A stretch of 34,499 nt of DNA, taken from positions 1-34,499 of the forward strand of contig NW_005434557.1 of the NCBI RefSeq assembly GCF_000315625.1, read 5' to 3'. Each line of letters opens with the position of its first letter. Position 1 is the stretch's first letter. The position numbers and the translations under genes are program-made. This stretch comes from Guillardia theta CCMP2712 (lineage: Eukaryota > Protista > Cryptophyta). A model generated the notes under the pieces. It saw only the letters and a list, made by a program, of their open reading frames with translations. It was not told where the DNA came from and made no database searches. Of the stretch, positions 2,986 to 20,743 are shown piece after piece.

Positions 2986-3255
2986 GAAATCGTCTTCTCA
3001 TCTCTTCAAAGTTCCCCCTAACATTTCAAAGCTCCTTTCAAACCAAAGATGGAGCAGTGCCTCATGTTTCGCGGGAAGTCAATTCTTTTCAAACCCTCCC
3101 TCTCTCTCTTCAAAGTTAGCCCGAGCATTTCAAACACACGGTCAACTTTAACGCAAGCTCTCGTGAGGCGGATTTGAACCCACTTCAAGATACTCATGTC
3201 ACCATTACAAATTTTGCACAGCATCTTCAAGAATATCAACTTCCCTCCAAAGTTG
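2986..3255 (+). repeat. ~270-bp TTCAAA-rich element upstream of surface-protein copy 1
   Basis: Near-identical to 11041-11310 (same orientation) and to the reverse complement of 6878-7148. Confidence 0.9.
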
Positions 3256-3314
3256 TAGAAAAAAAAACCAAGAGTATAAAACCCGACTGACCACGCAGCA
3301 GACGCTCCATCGCG

Positions 3315-4075
3315 ATGCTCTTCAGATCCTTCCTCTGCCTCACCCTCGTGGCGGCTACTGCTGCTACCACATGCTACATCTCTGACAAGAAGGCCACCAA
3401 CGGTAGCTCCCTCCCTCCTGTCTCTCAGGCTCTTCTGCTTCTTGAGTCCTTTCTCGTGCTTGTCCTTATCCTCCTCCTCCTCTTGCTCCTCCTCCGTACC
3501 GTCTCGGCAACAGATGCTTGAGCTGACCTATGACGCAGGCGGATGCCCCGAGACGACTTTCAAGTACGGAAGCTGCGCGTCGAAAGCTGTGGCTGATGCT
3601 GGCGTGGACGCCTTGATCACCTCACACAAGGCTCTAGCACCGGCTGACAATGCAGCTTGCAAGGCTAAGATCGACGCACAGTGCGCTGGCGTTGTAAGTC
3701 AGAGAGAAGCTGGCTTGCTTGCCTACAGCCTATTGACTTGTTTCATGATCGCAGAAGGCGAAGGGATCCGACTGCGCCGCGTACTGTCCGATACTTCCTA
3801 CAGTGACTGGATGCATGACTGACTCGGACTGCACCTCGACGACGACCGTTCCTACTCCCTTGGCTTGCTGCAGCTCATTGAAGACCGTCTACTCCAACTT
3901 TTGCGAATATCCTAGCGCTACTCTCGATGCTGTCATCGCTGGGTTGAAGACTGGCGGCGGTTGTGCGGACACCAACTGCGTCTCTACTACCTCAGGAGCC
4001 ATGGGCTCAGCACCCATGTCCTTCGCCATGCTCCTTCTCGCCGTCGTTGCGAGCTTGACGGCCTCCAAGATCTGA
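3315..4075 (+). CDS. Secreted Cys-rich, putatively GPI-anchored surface protein, copy 1 (187 aa)
   Basis: Exons 3315-3402, 3539-3693 and 3755-4075 join in frame with GT-AG introns. Signal peptide MLFRSFLCLTLVAATAA, 14 Cys in the mature part, C-terminal SGAMGSAPMSFAMLLLAVVASLTASKI (small residues, spacer, hydrophobic tail). Confidence 0.88.
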
Positions 4076-4095
4076 TGCGAAGACTCTCGCTGACC

Positions 4096-5150
4096 TCAAC
4101 ACGCAATGTTCCTTGTATCTGATAATAAACTTGTCTTACCTCTGCGGTCTAGCGTCCGCGAGCTCCCACGCGAGGGCTCTGTCTCTCGCCACCTGCTGCT
4201 CTGGCCCCCCGTGAGGTACCGTGCCGAGGAGAGGAGGCGTGCGGAAGCACTCAAGACCACGACCAGAGGGTCTCGCGTGTCACTGTCGAGGTAGAGCAAG
4301 CCCTGCGCTGTGCTAAGCTTTGTACACGACCCCCGAATGCATACGCCTCTTCTCCTACAGCTCTTTCTCTTCTCCGCCAAGCCTCCCCGGCGTCTGCCTC
4401 CCCGTCATCACGACACGCGCCTCCAGCAGAGCCGATCATGCCTGCCGCCTCCAGCAGCAGCTCCGTCAGGATCTTCTGCTACTCGGGCGCAGTCTCTTCC
4501 TTGCATCTCCCTGACAACGCCATCGATGCCCCCGGACCTTCGGTCCCGAGGATCTGAGCTGTCGTCGGCATCGCCTGCTCAAGAGCGCTGGACGGCGGGA
4601 AGGAAGGGCGGCCTCTAGCGCGGTCCTCCGGGAAGACCCGGAGAGACATGGCAGCAGGGGGAAGAGAGAGCGCAGGACAGGTGCGAGGGATGCTGGATGT
4701 GAGGATGGTGACGATCTGGCTGACATGTCAAGCTCAGAGGTCTCGCAGACGTTGTTGATCAGACAGCGGTGTGACATGGCAACCAGCCACTCGTCCCGCG
4801 CGACGTGTCCTGTGCTCGCTGCTCTTTGTTCCTGTCCCTATAACCAATACTTCCTCCCTCCTCCGCTATCTCAGAGGATCTCCTCCTCCTTGCCTGCGAC
4901 CTCCTCCTCCCTCCTGCTGTTTGCCGTATCGTCGGGACTTGCGACCGCCTCCTCTGCAGCTGCCTTCGCTGGCCGAGCAGCAGCAGCGGCCGAAGTCTGA
5001 CTGCTGTGCAAGGCAGATGGTCAGGTACATTATCGCCTCGAGGTCAGGCATCAACTTCAGACGATAGCCCAGGGAGACGGAGGGCGAGAGGAGAGCAGAG
5101 ACGGAGGAGCTCAGTCAGACGATGACGGAGCACAAGGGAGTAGGAACCCC
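4096..5150 (-). pseudogene. Degenerate minus-strand coding-like relic (duplicated at ~8175-9266)
   Basis: Protein-like stretches interrupted by stops (ASMALSGRCKEETAPE*QKILTELLLEAAGMIG; QTSAAAAARPAKAAAEEAVASPDD...EEEIL*). Frameshifting indels differ between the two copies. Confidence 0.35.
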
Positions 5151-5170
5151 TTCATCAGATCTCTTCTCTC

Positions 5171-5707
5171 TTGGAACTCAACTATCAAAAACCTGCTGAC
5201 AAATCAATTTTACGTTTCTCGACACTCTGGATGCACAAACATGTCATGCATTTCAACGTTGATGGCGGTCGACTCTATGGGATCACCGAAGCGCTTCTGT
5301 ATTCATCGAACCAGTGCTACGACAACCTTAAGCTCCTGATGTCCAGTGCATTCTATAACCATATAGATAGAACAGTATGTGAAAGAATCCTGCAAGCTGG
5401 CGTTGGCATCGAAGATGAGCAGGACATCGACTACATCATCACACTCATCTTTCACAAGGAGGTGTATACTCGGAATCTGACTGGCCCAGTCGGAGAGGAT
5501 CCACACAGATATGTCTTACAGGACAAGTTGATTCAATCGTCAAAGTGGTTTGATGCCAAGACTCCGTCAGAGCTCTGCGGGGGTGAGCTCAAGCCTCCGC
5601 AGGAAGAAGTCTCATTGAGCAAGCGTGGGCAGCAAGAGCAGCTATATGACTCTTACAGCTACAAAGGCAGCAACGGCTACTGGCTCCCTGAGGTACAACC
5701 CCTGTAG
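5171..5707 (+). CDS. Intronless ORF of unknown function, possibly a captured fragment, copy 1
   Basis: Open frame 5144-5707 with globular composition and lower GC than flanks. Copy 2 keeps the frame with a 3-nt deletion (EVYTR to EDTR). First ATG at 5231. Confidence 0.45.
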   Translation: MELNYQKPADKSILRFSTLWMHKHVMHFNVDGGRLYGITEALLYSSNQCYDNLKLLMSSAFYNHIDRTVCERILQAGVGIEDEQDIDYIITLIFHKEVYTRNLTGPVGEDPHRYVLQDKLIQSSKWFDAKTPSELCGGELKPPQEEVSLSKRGQQEQLYDSYSYKGSNGYWLPEVQPL

Positions 5708-5881
5708 CGCAACGGAGACTGCAAGGTAGGAGTGAGTACGATTGACTGAACCTCGAGGAGGATGATCGCTCGTGCGTGAGGAGTCTTGTTTACCCCTGGT
5801 GGTTCCCTTACGGGCTATGAAAGAATCGTCTACTGCTGAGATGGTCTGTTGACTTCCCTTCTGTGTGTGCAACGAACCTGT

Positions 5882-6443
5882 TGATGTGAGACTTGCTCCA
5901 ACAACGTAGCAAAGTGCACTTGGAAGAATGAAGAATGAAGCTAGATTTGTTTATGTATCAGCAGTAGCAAGATAATTTGTGTAGGGACCAATGTAGAAGA
6001 GAGAGGAAGTTCGAGCAGCGGAAGCCGCTCCTCTGCTGGCTTAAATAGTGTCGTAGATGATCTTGCTAATGTACGGTCAAGCCTCATCCTCGTAGTAATA
6101 TACCTGTCGTATGTACTGAGCCTTTACGACCAGCCGCCAGGTCCATCGTATAAGATGCACCCTGCCGGCCCCAAGTTTGGTGCTCGCTGTCTTCTCTCTT
6201 CAAGCCTCGCCGTTTCAAGGGCCTGTGCGACAGTGTCAGGGTCAAGCCTCAGGCTCCTCGACTCTCCTGATTGTCCTCGTACTGATCATTCTTCAACTTC
6301 ACCGTTGAGTAAAAAGTACCCGACATAGTACCGGAGGTATTTCATATAAACTCCATATCGCCCTTTTGCTTTTGCTATTTCGGCATGATGCTGTTACATC
6401 GGTACAAGTCACTGAGTGCAACGATGTCATGGGTACAACATCA
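5882..6443 (-). mobile_element. Solo LTR (562 bp) with 5-bp target-site duplication CCTGT
   Basis: Ends TGATGT...ACATCA (TG..CA, 6-bp inverted repeat), flanked by cctgt at 5877-5881 and 6444-6448. The paralogous unit has a single cctgt at 10026-10030 (empty site). Strand guessed from TATTTAAG and ATAAAC motifs on minus. Confidence 0.88.
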
Positions 6444-6877
6444 CCTGTAATGTGTTTGTGATGAGTCTCGAATCGACTTCACATCACTTCTGTCACTGAG
6501 GGAGTCCCTCCCAGCCTCCCTCTGACTGACTGACTCAGGGGGGCGGGGGGGGTGACTCAGGCCGCCCATACGCCGGGGCTCAATTCTCCGGCCCGGCGGG
6601 CTTCCAGGGCTCAGGACCGCAGACGGACGGCCCCGGCACAGAGAGACTCCCGGCTGCTCGGCCCGGCCCGCCCGGTCACCCGGTGGCCGCGCATTGGAGC
6701 CGCCTGACGGCGTTGGCACTTGAAGGCCCGTCCGGCGGAGCCGCGTCGTTCGGAGTTCATTTTACTGAGTCTCTTAAAGCCTGACAGGCCTGCTATTTCC
6801 GGCCACTGCTGTCCCCCAAACTTAACTGATACCTTCACTTAACTTACTGCGCACAGGAACCTCGCTTTGTTTTCTGC

Positions 6878-7148
6878 CAACTTTGGAGAGAAGATGATAT
6901 TTTTGAAGATGCTGTGCAAAATTTGTAATGGTGACATGAGTATCTTGAAGTGGTTTCAAATCCGCCTCACGAGAGCTTGCGTTGAAGTTGACCGTGTGTT
7001 TTGAAATGCTCGGGCTAACTTTGAAGAGAGAGAGGGAGGGTTTGAAAAGAATTGACTTCCAGCGAAACACGAGGCACTGCTGAATCCTTGGTTTGAAGGC
7101 AGCTTTGAAATGTTGGGGGGAACTTTGAAGAGATGAGAAGACGATTTC
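6878..7148 (-). repeat. Inverted copy of the ~270-bp TTCAAA-rich element, upstream of surface-protein copy 2
   Basis: Reverse complement aligns end to end with 2986-3255 with scattered substitutions. Confidence 0.9.
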
Positions 7149-7241
7149 ACGTTCGCCCCATTCCCCTTTCCTTTTACTAGTTACCGGAAGTTAATTTTTA
7201 TTTATAAATATAAATGCCGACTGACCCAGACCTCCATCGCT

Positions 7242-8154
7242 ATGCTCTTCAGATCCTTCCTCTGCCTCACCCTCGTGGCGGCTACTGCTGCTACCACGTG
7301 CTACATCTCTGAGAAGAAGGCCACCAACGGTAGCTCCCTCCCTCCTGTCTCTCAGGCTCTTCTGCTTCTTGAGTCCTTCTCTTGCTCCTTCTCCTCATCG
7401 TCCTCTTGGTGTCGTATCGGGTTGTAAATCTCCTTCTTCCTCCCTGTAAAAGTGATTCACAGATGCTTGAGCTGACCTATGACGCAGGCGGATGCCCCGA
7501 GACGACTTTCAAGTTCGGAAGCTGCGCGTCGAAAGCTGTGGCTGATGCTGGCGTCGACGCAACCATCGCTGCACACAAGCTCGTAGCACCGGCTGACAAT
7601 GCAGCTTGCAAGGCTAAGATCGACGCACAGTGCGGTGCTATCGTGAGTCAGAGAGAAGCTGGCTTGCTTGCTTGCCTACAGCCTAGTGACTTGTTTCATG
7701 ATCGCAGAAGGCGAAGGGATCCGACTGCGCCGCGTACTGTCCGTTGCTTACCACAGTGACTGGATGCATGACTGACTCGGACTGCACCTCGACGACGACC
7801 GTTCCTGTTCCCAAGCCTTGCTGCAGCTCATTGAAGACCGTCTACTCCAACTTTTGCGAATATCCTAGCGCTACTCTCGATGCTGTCATCGCTGGGTTGA
7901 AGACTGGCGGCGGTTGTGCGGACAGCAACTGCGTCTCTACTTCTGAGAAGGTGGATACAACTCCTGTCCCCACATCTGCCTCAAAAGTAGGGGATACAAC
8001 ACCTGTCCCCCAATCAACCTCAAGCGTAGTGGATACAACACCGGTCTCCACGTCTACCTCGACGGTAGCCTCAGAAGCCATGGGCTCAGCACCCATGTCC
8101 TTCGCCATGCTCCTTCTCGCCGTCGTTGCGAGCTTGACGGCCTCCAAGATCTGA
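7242..8154 (+). CDS. Secreted Cys-rich, putatively GPI-anchored surface protein, copy 2 (229 aa, long Ser/Thr stalk)
   Basis: Exons 7242-7329, 7488-7642 and 7708-8154. Same 14 Cys; 42 extra residues containing three DTTPV repeats before the GPI-like tail. Confidence 0.88.
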
Positions 8155-9346
8155 TGCGAAGACTCTCGCTGACCTCAACACGCAATGTTCCTTGTAGTGT
8201 GCATTACATCTGATAATAAACTTGTCTTACCTCTGTGGTCTAGCGTCCGCGAGCTCCCACGCGAGGGCTCTTTCCCTCGCCACCTGCTGCTCTGGCCCCC
8301 CGTGAGGTACCGTGCCGAGGAGAGGAGGCGTGCAGAAGCACTCAAGACCACGACCAGAGGGCCTCGCTCGCACAAGTCCTCGCGTGTCACTGTCGAGGTA
8401 GAGCAAGCCCTGCGCTGTGCTAAGCTTGTACACGACCCCCGACTGCATACGCCTCTTCTCCTACAGCTCTTTCTCTTCCTTCTCCGCCAAGCCTCCCCGG
8501 CGTCTGCCTCCCTATCATCACGACACGCGCCTCCAGCAGAGCCGATCATGCCTGCCGCCTCCAGCAGCAGCTCCGTCAGGATCTTCTGCTACTCGGGCGC
8601 AGTCTCTTCCTTGCATCTCCCTGACAACGCCATCGATGCCCCCGGACCTTCGGTCCCGAGGATCTGAGCTGTCGTCGGCATCGCCTGCTCAACTTTGGAG
8701 CTCTTGACGGCGGGAAGGAAGGGCGGCCTCTAGCGCGGTCCCCCGGGAAGACCCGGAGAGACATGGCAGCAGGGGGAAGAGAGAGCGCAGGACAGGTGCG
8801 AGGGATGCTGGATGTGAGGATGGTGACGATCTGGCTGACATGTCAAGCTCAGAGGTCTCGCAGACGTTGTTGATCAGACAGCGGTGTGACATGGCAACCA
8901 GCCACTCATCTCCGCGCGACGTGTCCTGTGCTCGCTGCTCTTTGTTCCTGTCCCTACGACCAACCCCTCCTCCCTCCTCCGCGGTCACAGAGGATCTCCT
9001 CCTCCTTGCCTGCGACCTCCTCCTCCCTCCTGCTGTTTGCCGTATCGTCGGGACTTGCGACCGCCTCCTCTGCAGCTGCCTTCGCTGGCCGAGCAGCAGC
9101 AGCGGCCGAAGTCTGACTGCTGTGCAAGGCAGATGGTCAGGTACATTATCGCCTCGAGGTCAGGCATCAACTTCAGACGATAGACCAGGGAGACGGAGGG
9201 CGAGAGGAGAGCAGAGACGGAGGAGCTCAGTCAGAGGATGACGGAGCACAAGGGAGTAGGAACCCCTTCATCAGATCTCTTCTCTCTCGGAACTCAACTA
9301 TCAAAAACCTGCTGACAAATCAATTTTACGTTTCTCGACACTCTGG

Positions 9347-9820
9347 ATGCACAAACATGCCATGCATTTCAACGTTGATGGCGGTCGACTCTATGGGATC
9401 ACCGAAGCGCTTCTGTATTCATCGAACCAGTGCTACGACAACCTTAAGCTCCTGATGTCCAGTGCATTCTATAACCATATAGATAGAACAGTATGTGAAA
9501 GAATCCTGCAAGCTGGCGTTGGCATCGAAGATGAGCAGGACATCGACTACATCATCACACTCATCTTTCACAAGGAGGATACTCGGAATCTGACTGGCCC
9601 AGTCGGAGAGGATCCACACAGATATGTCTTACAGGACAAGTTGATTCAATCGTCAAAGTGGTTTGATGCCAAGACTCCGTCAGAGCTCTGCGGGGGTGAG
9701 CTCAAGCCTCCGCAGGAAGAAGTCTCATTGAGCAAGCGTGGGCAGCAAGAGCAGCTATATGACTCTTACAGCTACAAAGGAAGCAACGGCTACTGGCTCC
9801 CTGAGGTACAACCCCTGTAG
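9347..9820 (+). CDS. Intronless ORF of unknown function, copy 2
   Basis: Paralog of 5171-5707, frame intact. Confidence 0.45.
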   Translation: MHKHAMHFNVDGGRLYGITEALLYSSNQCYDNLKLLMSSAFYNHIDRTVCERILQAGVGIEDEQDIDYIITLIFHKEDTRNLTGPVGEDPHRYVLQDKLIQSSKWFDAKTPSELCGGELKPPQEEVSLSKRGQQEQLYDSYSYKGSNGYWLPEVQPL

Positions 9821-10415
9821 CGCAACGGAGACTGCAAGGTAGGAGTGAGTACGATTGACTGAACCTCGAGGAGGAGCAAGCAGCAGATCTAGTATGCAGA
9901 CGCACGAGGGATGATCGCTCGTGCGTGAGGAGTCTCGTTTACCCCTGGTGGTTCCCTTACGGTCTATGAAAGAATCGTCAACTGCTGAGATGGTCTGTTG
10001 ACTTCCCTTCTGTGTGTGCAACGAACCTGTATTGTGTTCAATTTGTGATGATTCTCGAATCGACTTCACATCACTTCTCTCCACAAGTTTCAGCAGGACA
10101 GACACAAGCAGGCGGTCGGTAATGACATCACTGGCTCAGTCAGTGGCCATCAAGTTCTGGCATACGGTACGCCGATCGTCATCGTCAGTCCCTCACAGCC
10201 TCCTCCCCCCTCCTCCCCCCTCCTCCCCCCTCCTCCCCCCTCCTCCCCCCTCCTCCCCCCTCCTCGCCCTCCCCGAACGCCCCCACCAGCCCGGATGACT
10301 CATAAGCTCAGTTAAACCATGGGAGCTCTAGAGTGACCTGCAGCAGAAGCTGCCTGTCGTCTAGAAAACCTGGTGAACAAAACATTTTCTTTTTTCTTTT
10401 TCTCTTCTTCTCTTT

Positions 10416-10515
10416 NNNNNNNNNNNNNNNNNNNNNNNNNNNNNNNNNNNNNNNNNNNNNNNNNNNNNNNNNNNNNNNNNNNNNNNNNNNNNNNNNNNNN
10501 NNNNNNNNNNNNNNN
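10416..10515. other. Assembly gap (100 N)
   Basis: Run of N. Confidence 1.
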
Positions 10516-11040
10516 GCTCCTGGGGTTCCGACATGATGGTCATAGTATTTCTATGTTGATGAGCAATTCTTGCCTTTACTATGGCTGCCCCCCACGAGCC
10601 AGGCTGAATCATCATGCTCAGGGCAATCATCAATTTCCTGTCAACAAAAATTTTATGTAATCATTTTCCGCTTCATCAATTTTTCCTTACAATAATCATC
10701 CACATCTTTCAAACTTCACTTTCCATTTTGTAACTTTACCCCACCCCTTTTAAAACCCCCCTTTCAACCTTCCTTTCGTACCCCTTCCGAACACCCACCC
10801 CTCAACACCCACACCCCCTACCCCTTTCACAAGAAGAATTCGCTATCGAACATACCGGTCCTCACTCCAGTGTCACATGATGGGGTCGGTGGCTCAATTC
10901 TGACCCCCCGCCCGTTCGATCGGAGCCGCCTCGTTCATTTTACTAGTCGGGCGCTGACATCGGAGTTGACTAATAATTGGTACGAATGAGCAGTAACGGT
11001 AGCTACCTTATATTCTTTTACCAGAAGGTAATATTTTTCG

Positions 11041-11310
11041 GAATCGTCTTCTCATCTCTTCAAAAATCTCCCTAACATTTCAAAGCTCCTTTCAAACCAA
11101 AGATGGAGCAGTGCCTCATGTTTCGCGGGAAGTCAATTCTTTTCAAACCCTCCCTCTCTCTCTTCAAAGTTAGCCCGAGCATTTCAAAACACACGGTCAA
11201 CTTCAACGCAAGCTCTCGTGAGGCGGATTTGAACCCACTTCAAGATACTCATCTCACCATTACAAATTTTGCACAGCATCTTCAAGAATATCAACTTCCC
11301 TCCAAAGTTG
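11041..11310 (+). repeat. Third copy of the TTCAAA-rich upstream element
   Basis: Near-identical to 2986-3255. Confidence 0.9.
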
Positions 11311-11369
11311 TAGAAAAAAAAACCAAGAGTATAAAACCCGACTGACCACGCAGCCGACGCTCCATCGCG

Positions 11370-12174
11370 ATGCTCTTCAGATCCTTCCTCTGCCTCACCC
11401 TCGTGGCGGCTACTGCTGCTACCACATGCTACATCTCTGAGAAGAAGGCCACCAACGGTAGCTCCCTCCCTCCTGTCTCTCAGGCTCTTCTGCTTCTTGA
11501 GTCCTTCTCGTGCTTGTCCTTATCCTCCTCGTCCTCTTGCTCCTCCTCCTCATCGTCCTCTTGGTGTCGTATCGGGTTGTAGATCTTCTTCACCGTGTAA
11601 GTGATTCACAGATGCTTGTGCTGACCTATGACGCAGGCGGATGCCCCGAGACGACTTTCAAGTACGGAAGCTGCGCGTCGAAAGCTGTGGCTGATGCTGG
11701 CGTCGACGCCTTGATCGCTGCACACAAGCTCGTAGCACCGGCTGACAATGCAGCTTGCAAGGCTAAGATCGACGCACAGTGCGCTGGCGTTGTAAGTCAG
11801 AGAGAAGCTGGCTTGCTTGCCTACAGCCTAGTGACTTGTTTCATGATCGCAGAAGGCAAAGGGATCCGACTGCGCCGCGTACTGTCCGTTGCTTACCACA
11901 GTGACTGGATGCATGACTGACTCGGACTGCACCTCGACGACGACCGTTCCTGTTCCCAAGCCTTGCTGCAGCTCATTGAAAACCGTCAACACCAACTTTT
12001 GCGAATATCCTAGCGCTACTCTCGATGCTGTCATCGCTGGGTTGAAGACTGGCGGCGGTTGTGCGGACACCAACTGCGTTCTCTACTTCAGGAGCCATGG
12101 GCTCAGCACCCATGTCCTTCGCCCATGCTCCTTTCTCGCCGTCGTTGCGAGCTTGACGGCCTTCCAAGATCTGA
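11370..12174 (+). CDS. Secreted Cys-rich surface protein, copy 3 (3' frameshifts probably contig-end errors)
   Basis: Exons 11370-11457, 11637-11791 and 11853-~12174. Several small indels occur only in the last ~140 bp before the N gap. Confidence 0.75.
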
Positions 12175-12218
12175 TGCGAAGCCTCTCGCTTGATCTCAAC
12201 ACGCAATTGTTCCTTGGT

Positions 12219-12946: not shown

Positions 12947-14824
12947 CGGCACATGGATAGCACAGCCCTGGTGTTGGGTGGTCCGAAGATCAGATCCTTC
13001 AGCGCTGACGACCTCATGCCCGATACCTGCCCCAGCATCAGCCTAGCTCCCCAAGCAGCTCATCGCCTTGCCGGCGTATCATCCAGCTTCTGCAAGATGT
13101 CGCCGACAGCAATCTGTCCGTCCTCTGCTGCAGCTCCTCCCTCGTAGACCTACATCCTACACTCATGACAAGGAAAGCACAGGCGGCGGCGGCGCAAGTG
13201 GAGGCGAAGGAGGAGGGAGAAAAGGAAGAGGTGGGGGTTAGGAGAAGGAGGAGGAGGAGGAGGAGGAGGAAGGGGGGGGGAGGGAAGGAGGAGGAGGAAG
13301 AGGAGGAGGAGGAGGAGACCTCAGTGACCATAAAGTCTCCATGCTGATTCTTCTTAATTCCAATGCCTGCTCACACGCTCAGCCACTTGCCAGCTCTGCG
13401 GGTCTGCTTCCTCACCGACTCCGACACCTTCGCCCTTGTACGCCGCTGCGGCTGCTGCAGCTGGGGGGGATCGAGCAGCAGCAGCTTGTGCGGGTGTCGA
13501 CTTGGTGAACGAGACGCTACGCGCTGGTCACGCTACACACTCGAACTGAGGAGAGGACAAACCTTCCCATCAGGTTGGTCAGGGAGGACAGCGACGAAGA
13601 GAGCTTTGCTGACGCATCTCCTGCCGTAGCGCTGAACGAATGTCTCGTCAGGTGGAGACGGGATGGCGCGAAAGAAGCTGAGACCTGAGGGAAGAGATGG
13701 AGGAGGACGCCAGCCCTCCGATGTCACCGAGCGCGCTGAAGAGGGAGGAAGACTTCTTCTGCTCTGGTTCCGTGTGAACGCCCTTGAGGGGTCGACGAGT
13801 GATGACTGCGGTCTTCAGCTCTCCTTCCTCCGTTTGCAACTGCATCATCCCCTGTCAGTGCCTCCTCCTCCCCCTCCTGATCACAGCTCCCCATCATCCT
13901 CCCCCCACTCCTCCATCTCCTCAAGGCCTCCTCCTCCTCCCTTTCCCCTGGCCCTTGCTCTCCCCAATCCCTCCCCTCCCTCCTGCTCCTCCTCCGAGTC
14001 CGCAAGGTCACCTCGAGCGTGACCGTCGTCCCCTCCCTTCCTTTGATGTGAGACACGAGGTCTTTCATGCTCATGTCGATCAGCGACAGGCCGTTGCAAG
14101 ACAGCAGTATGTCTCCTACTTGCAGCTGGCCTGACTCTGCTGCTGGCCCTCCCGGCACCAGCTTCGTCACCACGAAGTTTGCACTCTCATCGAGGGTGAA
14201 GCCCACACCGATCCCCACGTCCGAGGCTGCGCTGCTCTTGCTCTGTCCGCTCTTGAGGCTTATGGCTCCCAACAGGCTCGACGAGGCCGCGTTCAGGATA
14301 GAGGATGAGGCAGCGATTGTGCTCGAGAGGAGGCTTGCTTCGCTCTCCTTCGCCACGGGCTCTCCTTGCGCCACACGCACGAGGGAGACATCATGGAGGC
14401 TACCTTCAGGTCCTCGCTGCAGGAGGAGCTTCACCTCGCTTCCGTCAGGCCCTCTCAGCTCCTGCGTCAGAGCTGTTGTACTCAGAGGTCCTACTGGCCG
14501 CTCGTCGACCTCTAGGATGATGTCGTTCTCGAAGACCAGCCCGCTAAGACGCGCAGGCCAGCCATCCTTGAGCTTCTTCACCATGTGGTTACCTAGCTTA
14601 TCTCGACCCAGCCCGATTCCGATCCCAGCATTCTTAGTCACATCTACCACACAGCTTCCGTCGATGCTCGCACCTCCTCGGAGACGAATGTTGCCATGAT
14701 GCGCTTGCATCGCACAACCAAGCGAGCAAGTATGGGGTACATTACAACCGTTCGAGCCTCCGACCCAGTAGATCGCCAGCAGCACGCACAAGATCGTCTT
14801 CCGGACGTAGAGAGCGGGAAGCAT
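12947..14824 (-). CDS. Signal peptide + RLRGG protein with three PDZ domains (3' end unresolved near the gap)
   Basis: Exon 1 has a hydrophobic N-terminus and RLRGG at aa 47-51. PDZ1: GIGIGL...WPARLSGLVFENDIILEVD...LRGPDGSEVKL. PDZ2: GIGVGF...GPAAESGQLQVGDILLSCNG...IKGREGTTVTLE. Downstream exons assemble PDZ3: GVGIGIKKNQHGDFMVTE/VYEGGAAAEDGQIAVGDILQKLDDTP/VSGMRSSALKDLIFGPPNTRAVLSMCR. Confidence 0.85.
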
Positions 14825-19430: not shown

Positions 19431-20378
19431 CTAACGAGAAGGTTGAAAGATTTGATGCTCCTCCCCCCGAGAAGACAACCACCATCGCTCCTTCCTCTTC
19501 TCCTCCTCCATCGCCTCCTGCGTCAGAATGCGCTCCTCACCATCCCTGATCTTGAGCACCCGCCTCACTGTCAGTGAGATCCTCCTCCCTCTCTCTACAG
19601 CCGTTCCCACACAGTAATCGTCACCGAGCACATGCAAGTTACATGTGTGGTGCTCGATGTTGTCTGCTCCTCTCTCGACTATCCCGTGCCAGTGGCTCTC
19701 GTATGCCTCCTCATTGAACACCAGCAGGCTGTTGGACAAGCACAGGACTGACGCGACTGCCTCCCCGCACTTGGTCGCATGCAGGCTCGGCCAAAACTGA
19801 AGGAGCGCGGGGCCATCGAGGGAGAGGATGGCGACTAGGGGCATGTAGAGGGGACCGTCCTGGTGAGGAGCAATGCCCTGACCCCTCGCGTACTCGTTGA
19901 GCAGGACATGATTCGGTCGTTCTTCCTCCTTGAACACACCCGCCTGCACCAGCGCGTCCATCACCGCATGTATGAACTGCGGGACCTCCGACGGGATCAT
20001 GCCATCCGGGTGCGGAGTTCCGCCATGGTTCTGCAGTCGCCTGCGCTTGAGGTTCGCCCATGAGCTCTCAGGCATCATGCTCACCCTCCTCAAGATCGCC
20101 GCCCCCTCCTCCTCCGTGAGGAAGTTCGGGATGTAGAACAAGCTGGCAAGCCCTCCGACTCTGAACTTGTCCAGCTCCATCGGCTCTCGTCGTGCAAGGC
20201 TCACAGGCAGGTCCTCCAGCTCCTGCCATGTCGGCGATGGCGTTGGGATCCCTGGAGTACACTTCCTGCTGCCGTCAGCCTCGCCTTCCACTCCATTCTC
20301 CTCGCCTTTCCTCAGCTGCTGGAGGGCCTTCTTCTTTTCTGCCTCAAGCAGAGCCTTGAAGTCAATTGCGGTCGCCAT
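19431..20378 (-). CDS. ALKBH6: 2OG-Fe(II) dioxygenase, AlkB homolog 6
   Basis: Intronless 315 aa. Motifs FYIPNFLTEEE, W-xx-LKRRRLQNHGG-x-PHP-x-GMI, PNHVLLNEY-xx-GQGI-x-PHQDGPLY (HxD), HGI (distal His) and RISLTVRRV (2OG-binding Arg). Confidence 0.93.
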   Translation of the reverse strand: MATAIDFKALLEAEKKKALQQLRKGEENGVEGEADGSRKCTPGIPTPSPTWQELEDLPVSLARREPMELDKFRVGGLASLFYIPNFLTEEEGAAILRRVSMMPESSWANLKRRRLQNHGGTPHPDGMIPSEVPQFIHAVMDALVQAGVFKEEERPNHVLLNEYARGQGIAPHQDGPLYMPLVAILSLDGPALLQFWPSLHATKCGEAVASVLCLSNSLLVFNEEAYESHWHGIVERGADNIEHHTCNLHVLGDDYCVGTAVERGRRISLTVRRVLKIRDGEERILTQEAMEEEKRKERWWLSSRGEEHQIFQPSR

Positions 20379-20649
20379 GTCTCTAACAGTCCAGCATGCA
20401 AAGAGCTACTGCTAGCCCCTGTTCCAAACCCTGGTCAGATCCACATACGTTCCCCTCTCACAATGTGCGATACTTTAGAAGACCAACGTCCTAGATCGAT
20501 CATGTCATGAAGATCTCCCCCCCCCCACCCTCCAAGTATCGCACATTGTGCGAGGGGAACGTCTGTGGATCTGACCAGCGTTTGGAACAGGGGCTAGCAG
20601 TAGCTCCTTGCATGTCGGACTGTCTACAGACATGGCGACCGCACTTGAC
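20361..20649. repeat. Imperfect inverted repeat, ~115-bp arms (20361-20475 / 20534-20649), ~58-bp spacer
   Basis: For example gagctactgctagcccctgttccaaac pairs with gtttggaacaggggctagcagtagctc, and cacaatgtgcgatactt with aagtatcgcacattgtg. Confidence 0.95.
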
Positions 20650-20743
20650 ATCCCGGGTCAGCCCGAGGCAAAAAAGACGCCGGTACTACCGTGCTGATGC
20701 CCATCTCGGATAACGGTGTTTTGGTTGAGACTTGTGGCTGGAA

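Follow-up and report, generated by a model that had tools for sequence, protein, structure and literature searches.

The window considered here, a stretch of 34,499 nucleotides from the cryptophyte Guillardia theta CCMP2712 (contig NW_005434557.1, forward strand), carries three genes, designated copies 1 to 3, which are recent duplicates within an unnamed family of about 20 small, disulfide-braced, probably lipid-anchored surface proteins. The family is undescribed and combines a familiar plan (signal peptide, disulfide domain, optional stalk and a tail of the glycosylphosphatidylinositol (GPI) type) with a domain that has no known match. We lean towards the interpretation that it is a lineage-restricted multigene family of GPI-type surface proteins which evolves by birth and death, with selection acting on variable patches. 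Selection for change is supported in part of the family because a class of sites with omega > 1 in a sister clade survives controls for multiple-hit changes, rate variation and recombination. The genes in the window, and the stalk confined to one of them, are arranged as follows.

3315..4075, plus strand: copy 1 (exons 3315-3402, 3539-3693 and 3755-4075)
7242..8154, plus strand: copy 2, encoding 229 aa (exons 7242-7329, 7488-7642 and 7708-8154)
7942..8067, plus strand: Ser/Thr/Pro-rich stalk of copy 2, a 126-nt in-frame insertion with a 39-nt repeat (x2.8)
11370..12174, plus strand: copy 3, GUITHDRAFT_117854 (exons 11370-11457, 11637-11791 and 11853-12174)

The three genes were confirmed as real. 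They share a three-exon structure with first and second exons of 88 and 155 nt and GT-AG introns in phases 1 and 0, and each encodes a signal peptide, a domain with 14 cysteines in the mature protein and a GPI-type tail. The spliced product of copy 1 (GUITHDRAFT_117850, 187 aa) matches the database protein (P0001) letter for letter. The rebuilt models thus agree with the first-pass annotation of this DNA, which had described three paralogs with identical exon structure and 14 invariant Cys. The stalk is absent from copies 1 and 3, from a fourth, near-identical copy on the small contig C568 and from L086, a metagenome gene of a wild relative which is about 80% identical to the local copies and was used as the outgroup; independent DNA reads cover the stalk region of copy 2 without differences.

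Exon and profile searches of the G. theta assembly (87.1 Mb, 669 contigs) found about 22 family loci. Three-exon models were built for 17 of them and 16 share the intron phases and the tail plan, the C15 model being doubtful; at the C163 locus, exons 2-3 lie within one frame. Clusters were found on C117 (two contiguous members and a third across a gap), C29 (three) and C166 (two), and the remaining members are dispersed. The C166 genes (C166:105734-107950; L005, L006) stand head-to-head and are 98% identical; one of them has lost the exon 2 acceptor and start by a 120-base deletion and lacks the last cysteine. The C173 paralogue is broken in appearance. Two predicted proteins (C26:2284-2490 and C29:490791-490997; L016, L017) are identical although they lie on different scaffolds, one of them near a scaffold end. 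At C48:275505-275747, the second half of the domain apparently lies inside an open frame of 614 codons, where it is perhaps a module of a larger protein. Homologues were found in Hanusia phi, in one MMETSP transcript and in marine and other metagenomes; we infer that the unnamed metagenome homologues are cryptophytes. One of them, referred to here as the marine homologue (L047:10001-10579), is an intronless gene of an unnamed marine eukaryote present in dozens of metagenomes. A viral origin of this gene was considered and rejected, as it lies on a eukaryote-like contig next to genes for a ubiquitin hydrolase and a threonine dehydratase.

In all full-length members, 27-47 residues follow the last cysteine, or 73 in the case of copy 2. 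In 21 proteins, the tail consists of small residues after the last Cys, a hydrophobic stretch (mean Kyte-Doolittle value 1.7-2.9) and then 0-9 residues. The GPI transamidase subunits Gaa1 and Gpi16 are encoded in the genome, and GPI anchoring of the family members appears likely. The earlier proposal of a secreted, disulfide-rich GPI-type surface family was borne out insofar as the signal peptide, Cys domain and tail anatomy are kept, the surface location being predicted from sequence. That no named domain would be recognised was also correct: Pfam gave at most stray weak matches to the exons and 21 members, and the Protein Data Bank (PDB) gave none. No description of the family was found in the literature searched.

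The evidence for selection comes from five genes on C29, C27 and C41 (C29:322750-332477, C27:207122, C41:235661; L007-L010, L013), which form a sister clade with 100/100 support. The DNA of their signal peptides and tails differs by 0-8% and that of exon 2 by 13-23%; at both ends of the gene, the identity extends to silent sites. For the mature domain, the likelihood-ratio test (LRT) of model M2a against M1a gave 59.7. With multi-base changes allowed, the LRT was 24.7 (omega 6.9 for 13% of sites). Masking of the loop that is prone to indels gave 21.9, and the strictest model, which added site rate variation, gave 15.0 (p 6e-4), with p of about 0.045 for each exon by itself. The positively selected class had an omega of 5-7 at 13-19% of sites. 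The largest LRT in 45 null simulations with multiple-hit changes and 3-8 recombined segments was 9.5. In copy-1 numbering, the selected sites are 51, 54, 55, 57, 80 and 122, together with a loop near 94-98 in the unmasked run. These results point to positive selection at specific sites in one clade of the family at least, that on C29/C27/C41. Sites of difference between copies 1 and 2 fall on the most variable columns of the sister clade more often than expected by chance (8/15, odds 4.2, p 0.012).

Copies 1 and 2 were compared with each other and with their duplicated 3' flanks, which are the following.

3990..5881, plus strand: 3' flank, first copy, with an orphan open reading frame (ORF) at 5171-5707
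8069..10030, plus strand: 3' flank, second copy; its orphan ORF, at 9287-9820, differs by 3 substitutions and a deletion of 3 nt

The flank copies differ by 25 substitutions in 1675 aligned bases (1.5%) and by 7 indels, so that the ~2 kb of duplicated flank is indeed nearly identical, as had been noted. The coding sequences diverge by 5.6%, which is 3.7-fold more (p 9e-7), and codons that carry more than one change account for the entire surplus. Two or more base changes were found in 9 of the 20 changed codons against an expected 6% (p 6e-7), changed codons are clustered along the two copies (p 0.002), and adjacent substitutions are commoner in the coding region than in the flank (p 0.013). 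The multi-nucleotide and clustered character of the codon changes noted in the first-pass annotation is therefore statistically well founded. The single-base nonsynonymous rate against the wild relative is half the synonymous rate, and the coding frame is therefore under constraint.

Several results weigh against the interpretation that we favour. The codon models were our own implementation, applied to five sequences in which gene conversion is evident. With the stalk excluded, copies 1 and 2 differ in 17 amino-acid-changing and 3 silent codons. The previously reported ~16:3 count thus holds as a count, but not as evidence of selection: nonsynonymous sites make up 74% of all sites, the neutral expectation is about 3:1, 17/20 gives a binomial p of 0.21, and the Nei-Gojobori ratio of nonsynonymous to synonymous rates (dN/dS) is 0.83. 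The single-base rates, 1.9% nonsynonymous and 2.1% synonymous, match the flank. For the local copies together with L086, M2a was preferred over M1a without a multi-base term (LRT 12.5), and the site signal was gone when multi-base changes were allowed (LRT 0.17, p 0.92). Multi-nucleotide changes cause false calls of positive selection, as set out in a preprint (bioRxiv 10.1101/165969), and our null simulations without the multi-base term reached LRT values of up to 28. Among 19.8 million short RNA reads of one 2026 run, none aligned over its full length to copies 2-3 at 88% likeness; this is weak evidence, as the stretch offered no expressed control. Nine contigs of the marine homologue represent five alleles, among which the mature domain varies at three silent sites and the tail at three residues; the domain is thus not hypervariable everywhere.

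Since the site signal is lost with multi-base changes and the count fits neutrality, and since the local differences are too few, the copies in the window do not by themselves prove selection; their differences appear indistinguishable from drift with complex mutations. The diversifying pressure proposed earlier for these copies is accordingly supported in the sister clade and not in the window. Drift might indeed account for the whole family if redundant, mostly silent duplicates gained complex mutations wherever the disulfide frame allows and gene conversion homogenised ends and flanks, with no outside partner involved. This fits every local statistic, the lack of RNA reads on copies 2-3, the C166 paralogue without its exon 2 start, the apparently broken C173 paralogue and the identity of the sister-clade ends down to silent sites. 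We nevertheless consider it rather unlikely, because it leaves out the omega > 1 class of the sister clade, which withstood all three controls.

The history of the local copies was resolved with the wild outgroup as (copy 1,(copy 2,(3,4))). Among the polarised changes, 9 are private to copy 1, 12 to copy 2 and 1 to copy 4, 6 are common to copies 2 and 4, and 1 conflicts; copy 2 has therefore changed far faster than copies 3/4 since the split. The possibility that copy 3 is a gene-conversion mosaic was largely rejected, since a single tree accounts for 28 of the 29 polarised sites, and its patchwork appearance seems to be largely a matter of ordinary descent.

AlphaFold2 modelled residues 17-160 of copy 1 with a mean predicted local distance difference test score (pLDDT) of 88.8 and a predicted template modelling score (pTM) of 0.77, as a beta-hairpin followed by five helices; a distant homologue gave the same order of elements (pLDDT 83.9). 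The variable patches comprise residues of about 50-62 at the end of helix 1, 79-81 at the end of helix 2, 94-98 in the loop that follows CxxxC and 115-122 in the loop and helix around CC; the main one in the model is the second half of helix 1. Foldseek found no match in the PDB, viral and Atlas libraries (best Atlas template modelling score 0.39), and zero PDB matches were obtained by sequence or by profile. The Atlas feature search gave none for copy 1 and three unnamed clusters below 0.9 for the marine homologue. Weak fold matches do not prove that the predicted fold is new.

Glypicans and folate receptors are GPI-anchored. The family could be a set of receptors or carriers distantly like the cysteine-rich domain (CRD) of Frizzled, glypican and folate receptor, diversifying for ligands rather than for escape from enemies. 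Three glypicans were among the top five structures of the VIA search with copy 1 (Z 4.1, 4.0 and 3.8, within background; 84-97 residues aligned, root mean square deviation 3.4-4.0), and both groups have a CxxxC motif together with a GPI-type tail. With the second model, the glypican Z was 2.8 at rank 22. The superfamily of Frizzled-type CRDs (Frizzled, glypican, folate receptor, NPC1; PMC4256011) resembles our proteins in having an extracellular, disulfide-rich helical domain with a CxxxC helix, whereas its published spacing, CX8CX6C..CX3CX6-7C, and the glypican variant of it both differ from the CX7C, X9, CX3C, X8 found here. As a Z near 4 is background and was not repeated with the second model, and profile searches of Pfam and PDB gave no match, we regard this alternative as improbable.

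Oomycete elicitin-like (ELL) proteins combine a small helical disulfide domain with an optional Ser/Thr stalk and a GPI-type tail in a multigene family, and elicitins have six Cys. The Guillardia domain has 14, and the elicitin Pfam model matched 0 of 21 members. The Ser proteins of Tetrahymena and other ciliate immobilization antigens (PMC4136848) are likewise polymorphic, Cys-rich GPI-type products of multigene families in free-living protists, some in tandem clusters of similar members as on C117, C29 and C166. Ser antigens are built of periodic repeated blocks of 6, 8 or 10 Cys (PMC4136848), whereas the Guillardia family has a single, non-repeated 14-Cys alpha/beta domain of about 140 residues and its roughly 22 genes are mostly dispersed. 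No named ciliate protein was among 21 matches in 1.84 billion representatives. The suggested likeness to ciliate immobilization antigens thus extends to the general architecture; repeated Cys blocks are absent from all members and no sequence homology was found, and the family is not a member of the ciliate antigen family. The variant surface proteins of Giardia, the variant surface glycoproteins of trypanosomes and the promastigote surface antigens of Leishmania (PMC2584048) share conserved ends, a variable core, positive selection and recombination with our family; unlike these parasite proteins, it faces no host immunity, has other domains and forms a far smaller repertoire. The family behaves like other fast-changing protist surface families. 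The term variant-surface-antigen locus used in the first-pass annotation was an overstatement, as the family is mostly dispersed and the marine homologue is near-invariant among wild alleles.

Each copy is preceded by an upstream element of 280 bp, which is inverted before copy 2.

2986..3266, plus strand: 280-bp upstream element of copy 1, with 9 TTCAA/TTGAA words against 0.8 expected
6866..7148, minus strand: element of copy 2, inverted, 94% identical
11042..11321, plus strand: element of copy 3, in the same orientation as that of copy 1

A TATA-like box lies directly after the element, about 40 nt 5' of the ATG. The element precedes this box, with its orientation kept, in copies 1, 3 and 4 and in L086, and is likely to be a promoter or enhancer. 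A transposon was considered and rejected, since just four genome matches were found. The TTCAA/TTGAA words are also enriched 5' of the C166 paralogue and not 5' of more distant members. The inverted element before copy 2 adjoins transposon-like repeats, and no strand-changing joint is listed for it in the DNA runs. Several probable RNA runs contain 5-20% of the words of 3000-8200, a figure for the interval as a whole and not for any part of it. Expression of the local copies is probably condition-specific.

True antigenic variation, with a single member displayed and switched, possibly via the inverted element, would suit the ciliate-antigen-like architecture, and the silence in bulk RNA would suit a silent repertoire. 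High expression was seen for no member, and the copies differ at less than 10% of residues. Given the 6% divergence of the inverted element and the lack of any listed joint that changes strand, an old, fixed rearrangement is likelier than a switch, and we judge such variation very improbable. The related and broader proposal of a new surface fold serving as a switchable, positively selected repertoire for recognition of, or decoy against, viruses or grazers, with copies turned on singly, is also hardly probable; if true, the repertoire would be an algal counterpart of ciliate surface antigens.

The position of copy 3 in the array depends on an assembly gap.

10416..10515, no strand: assembly gap between the flank of copy 2 and copy 3, unbridged in DNA runs

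Four runs searched over 6600-12218 (repeats 10195-10269 and 10381-10415 skipped) gave almost no read depth and zero spanning pieces at 10172-10547. Copies 1 and 2 adjoin each other within a single contig, and the tandem position of copy 3 therefore rests on scaffolding; of the tandem array of three described earlier, the contiguity of the first two stands and the place of the third is unproven. No exon spans the gap, so reading frames are untouched by it. As assembled, copy 3 has frameshifts between its last cysteine and the following gap (12219), no more than 140 bases from the latter. Missing letters at 12079 and 12082 are restored by two independent DNA runs, the sequence being copy-1-like there, and one run reads the common letters at 11981-11991. 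The frameshifts are probably read errors at a contig end; contigs of sister copies also align there.

Copy 3 might be an assembly duplicate or an allele of copy 4, which would remove a third tandem gene and affect the array, not the family. Unbridged gaps flank copy 3 on both sides, and its coding sequence equals that of the C568 copy except at the error-prone end; the 3' end of the latter is intact. The flanks of the two differ, though, and the upstream junction of copy 3 (piece 10720-11099, the element plus copy-3-specific DNA) was read without differences in an independent 2021 run. Contig depths, a rough estimate, were 39-49 for unique pieces, 89-103 for two-copy pieces and 168 for the shared core, and about four copies therefore fit. 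A duplicate or allele of this kind thus seems unlikely. At 10025-10415 the sequence at first resembles the spacer that precedes copy 2 (6443-6520), a likeness that is then lost. This stretch may come from the poor end of a read, and the tandem unit may occur one more time than the assembly shows. A polylinker resemblance of the letters directly before the gap was rejected after a plasmid search without a match.

One further feature separates the copies.

5882..6845, no strand: spacer with dispersed transposon-like repeats (72 among the genome matches listed)

The orphan ORF (178 codons), which is duplicated together with the surface gene, gave no Pfam match and no homologue outside the genome. 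Its last 50 codons match about 15 other genome places, which suggests that it may in part be repeat-derived. Elsewhere in the window, an ORF at 13724-14824 on the minus strand has a hydrophobic start and, by eye, repeated PDZ-like segments, and 20333-20677 is an imperfect palindrome of 345 bp with arms of 90 and 53 bases.

The anatomy on which the birth-and-death interpretation with selected patches builds is shared by about 20 paralogues and by distant homologues: after the signal peptide comes a 14-Cys domain of 140 residues, in some cases a Ser/Thr stalk, and finally a short hydrophobic tail without a cytosolic part. New copies arise by duplication, often beside transposon debris, with near-identical ends and change in a few patches. 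Under this interpretation, the protein would be exported, braced by seven disulfides and held by GPI on the outer cell face, where the variable patches may form a binding surface for an outside partner (attachment of a virus or parasite, a grazer, or self or mate recognition) that drives the change. The three local copies are a very young branch, with their differences within those patches.

The apparent 16:3 excess between two copies is a warning, as it arises from neutrality plus multi-base mutations, whereas the genuine signal lies in another clade. Hardly anything is known about the outer-face proteins of cryptophyte cells. For this widespread group of algae, a well-modelled small domain with defined fast patches, possibly a new disulfide fold, provides candidate recognition factors or virus receptors.

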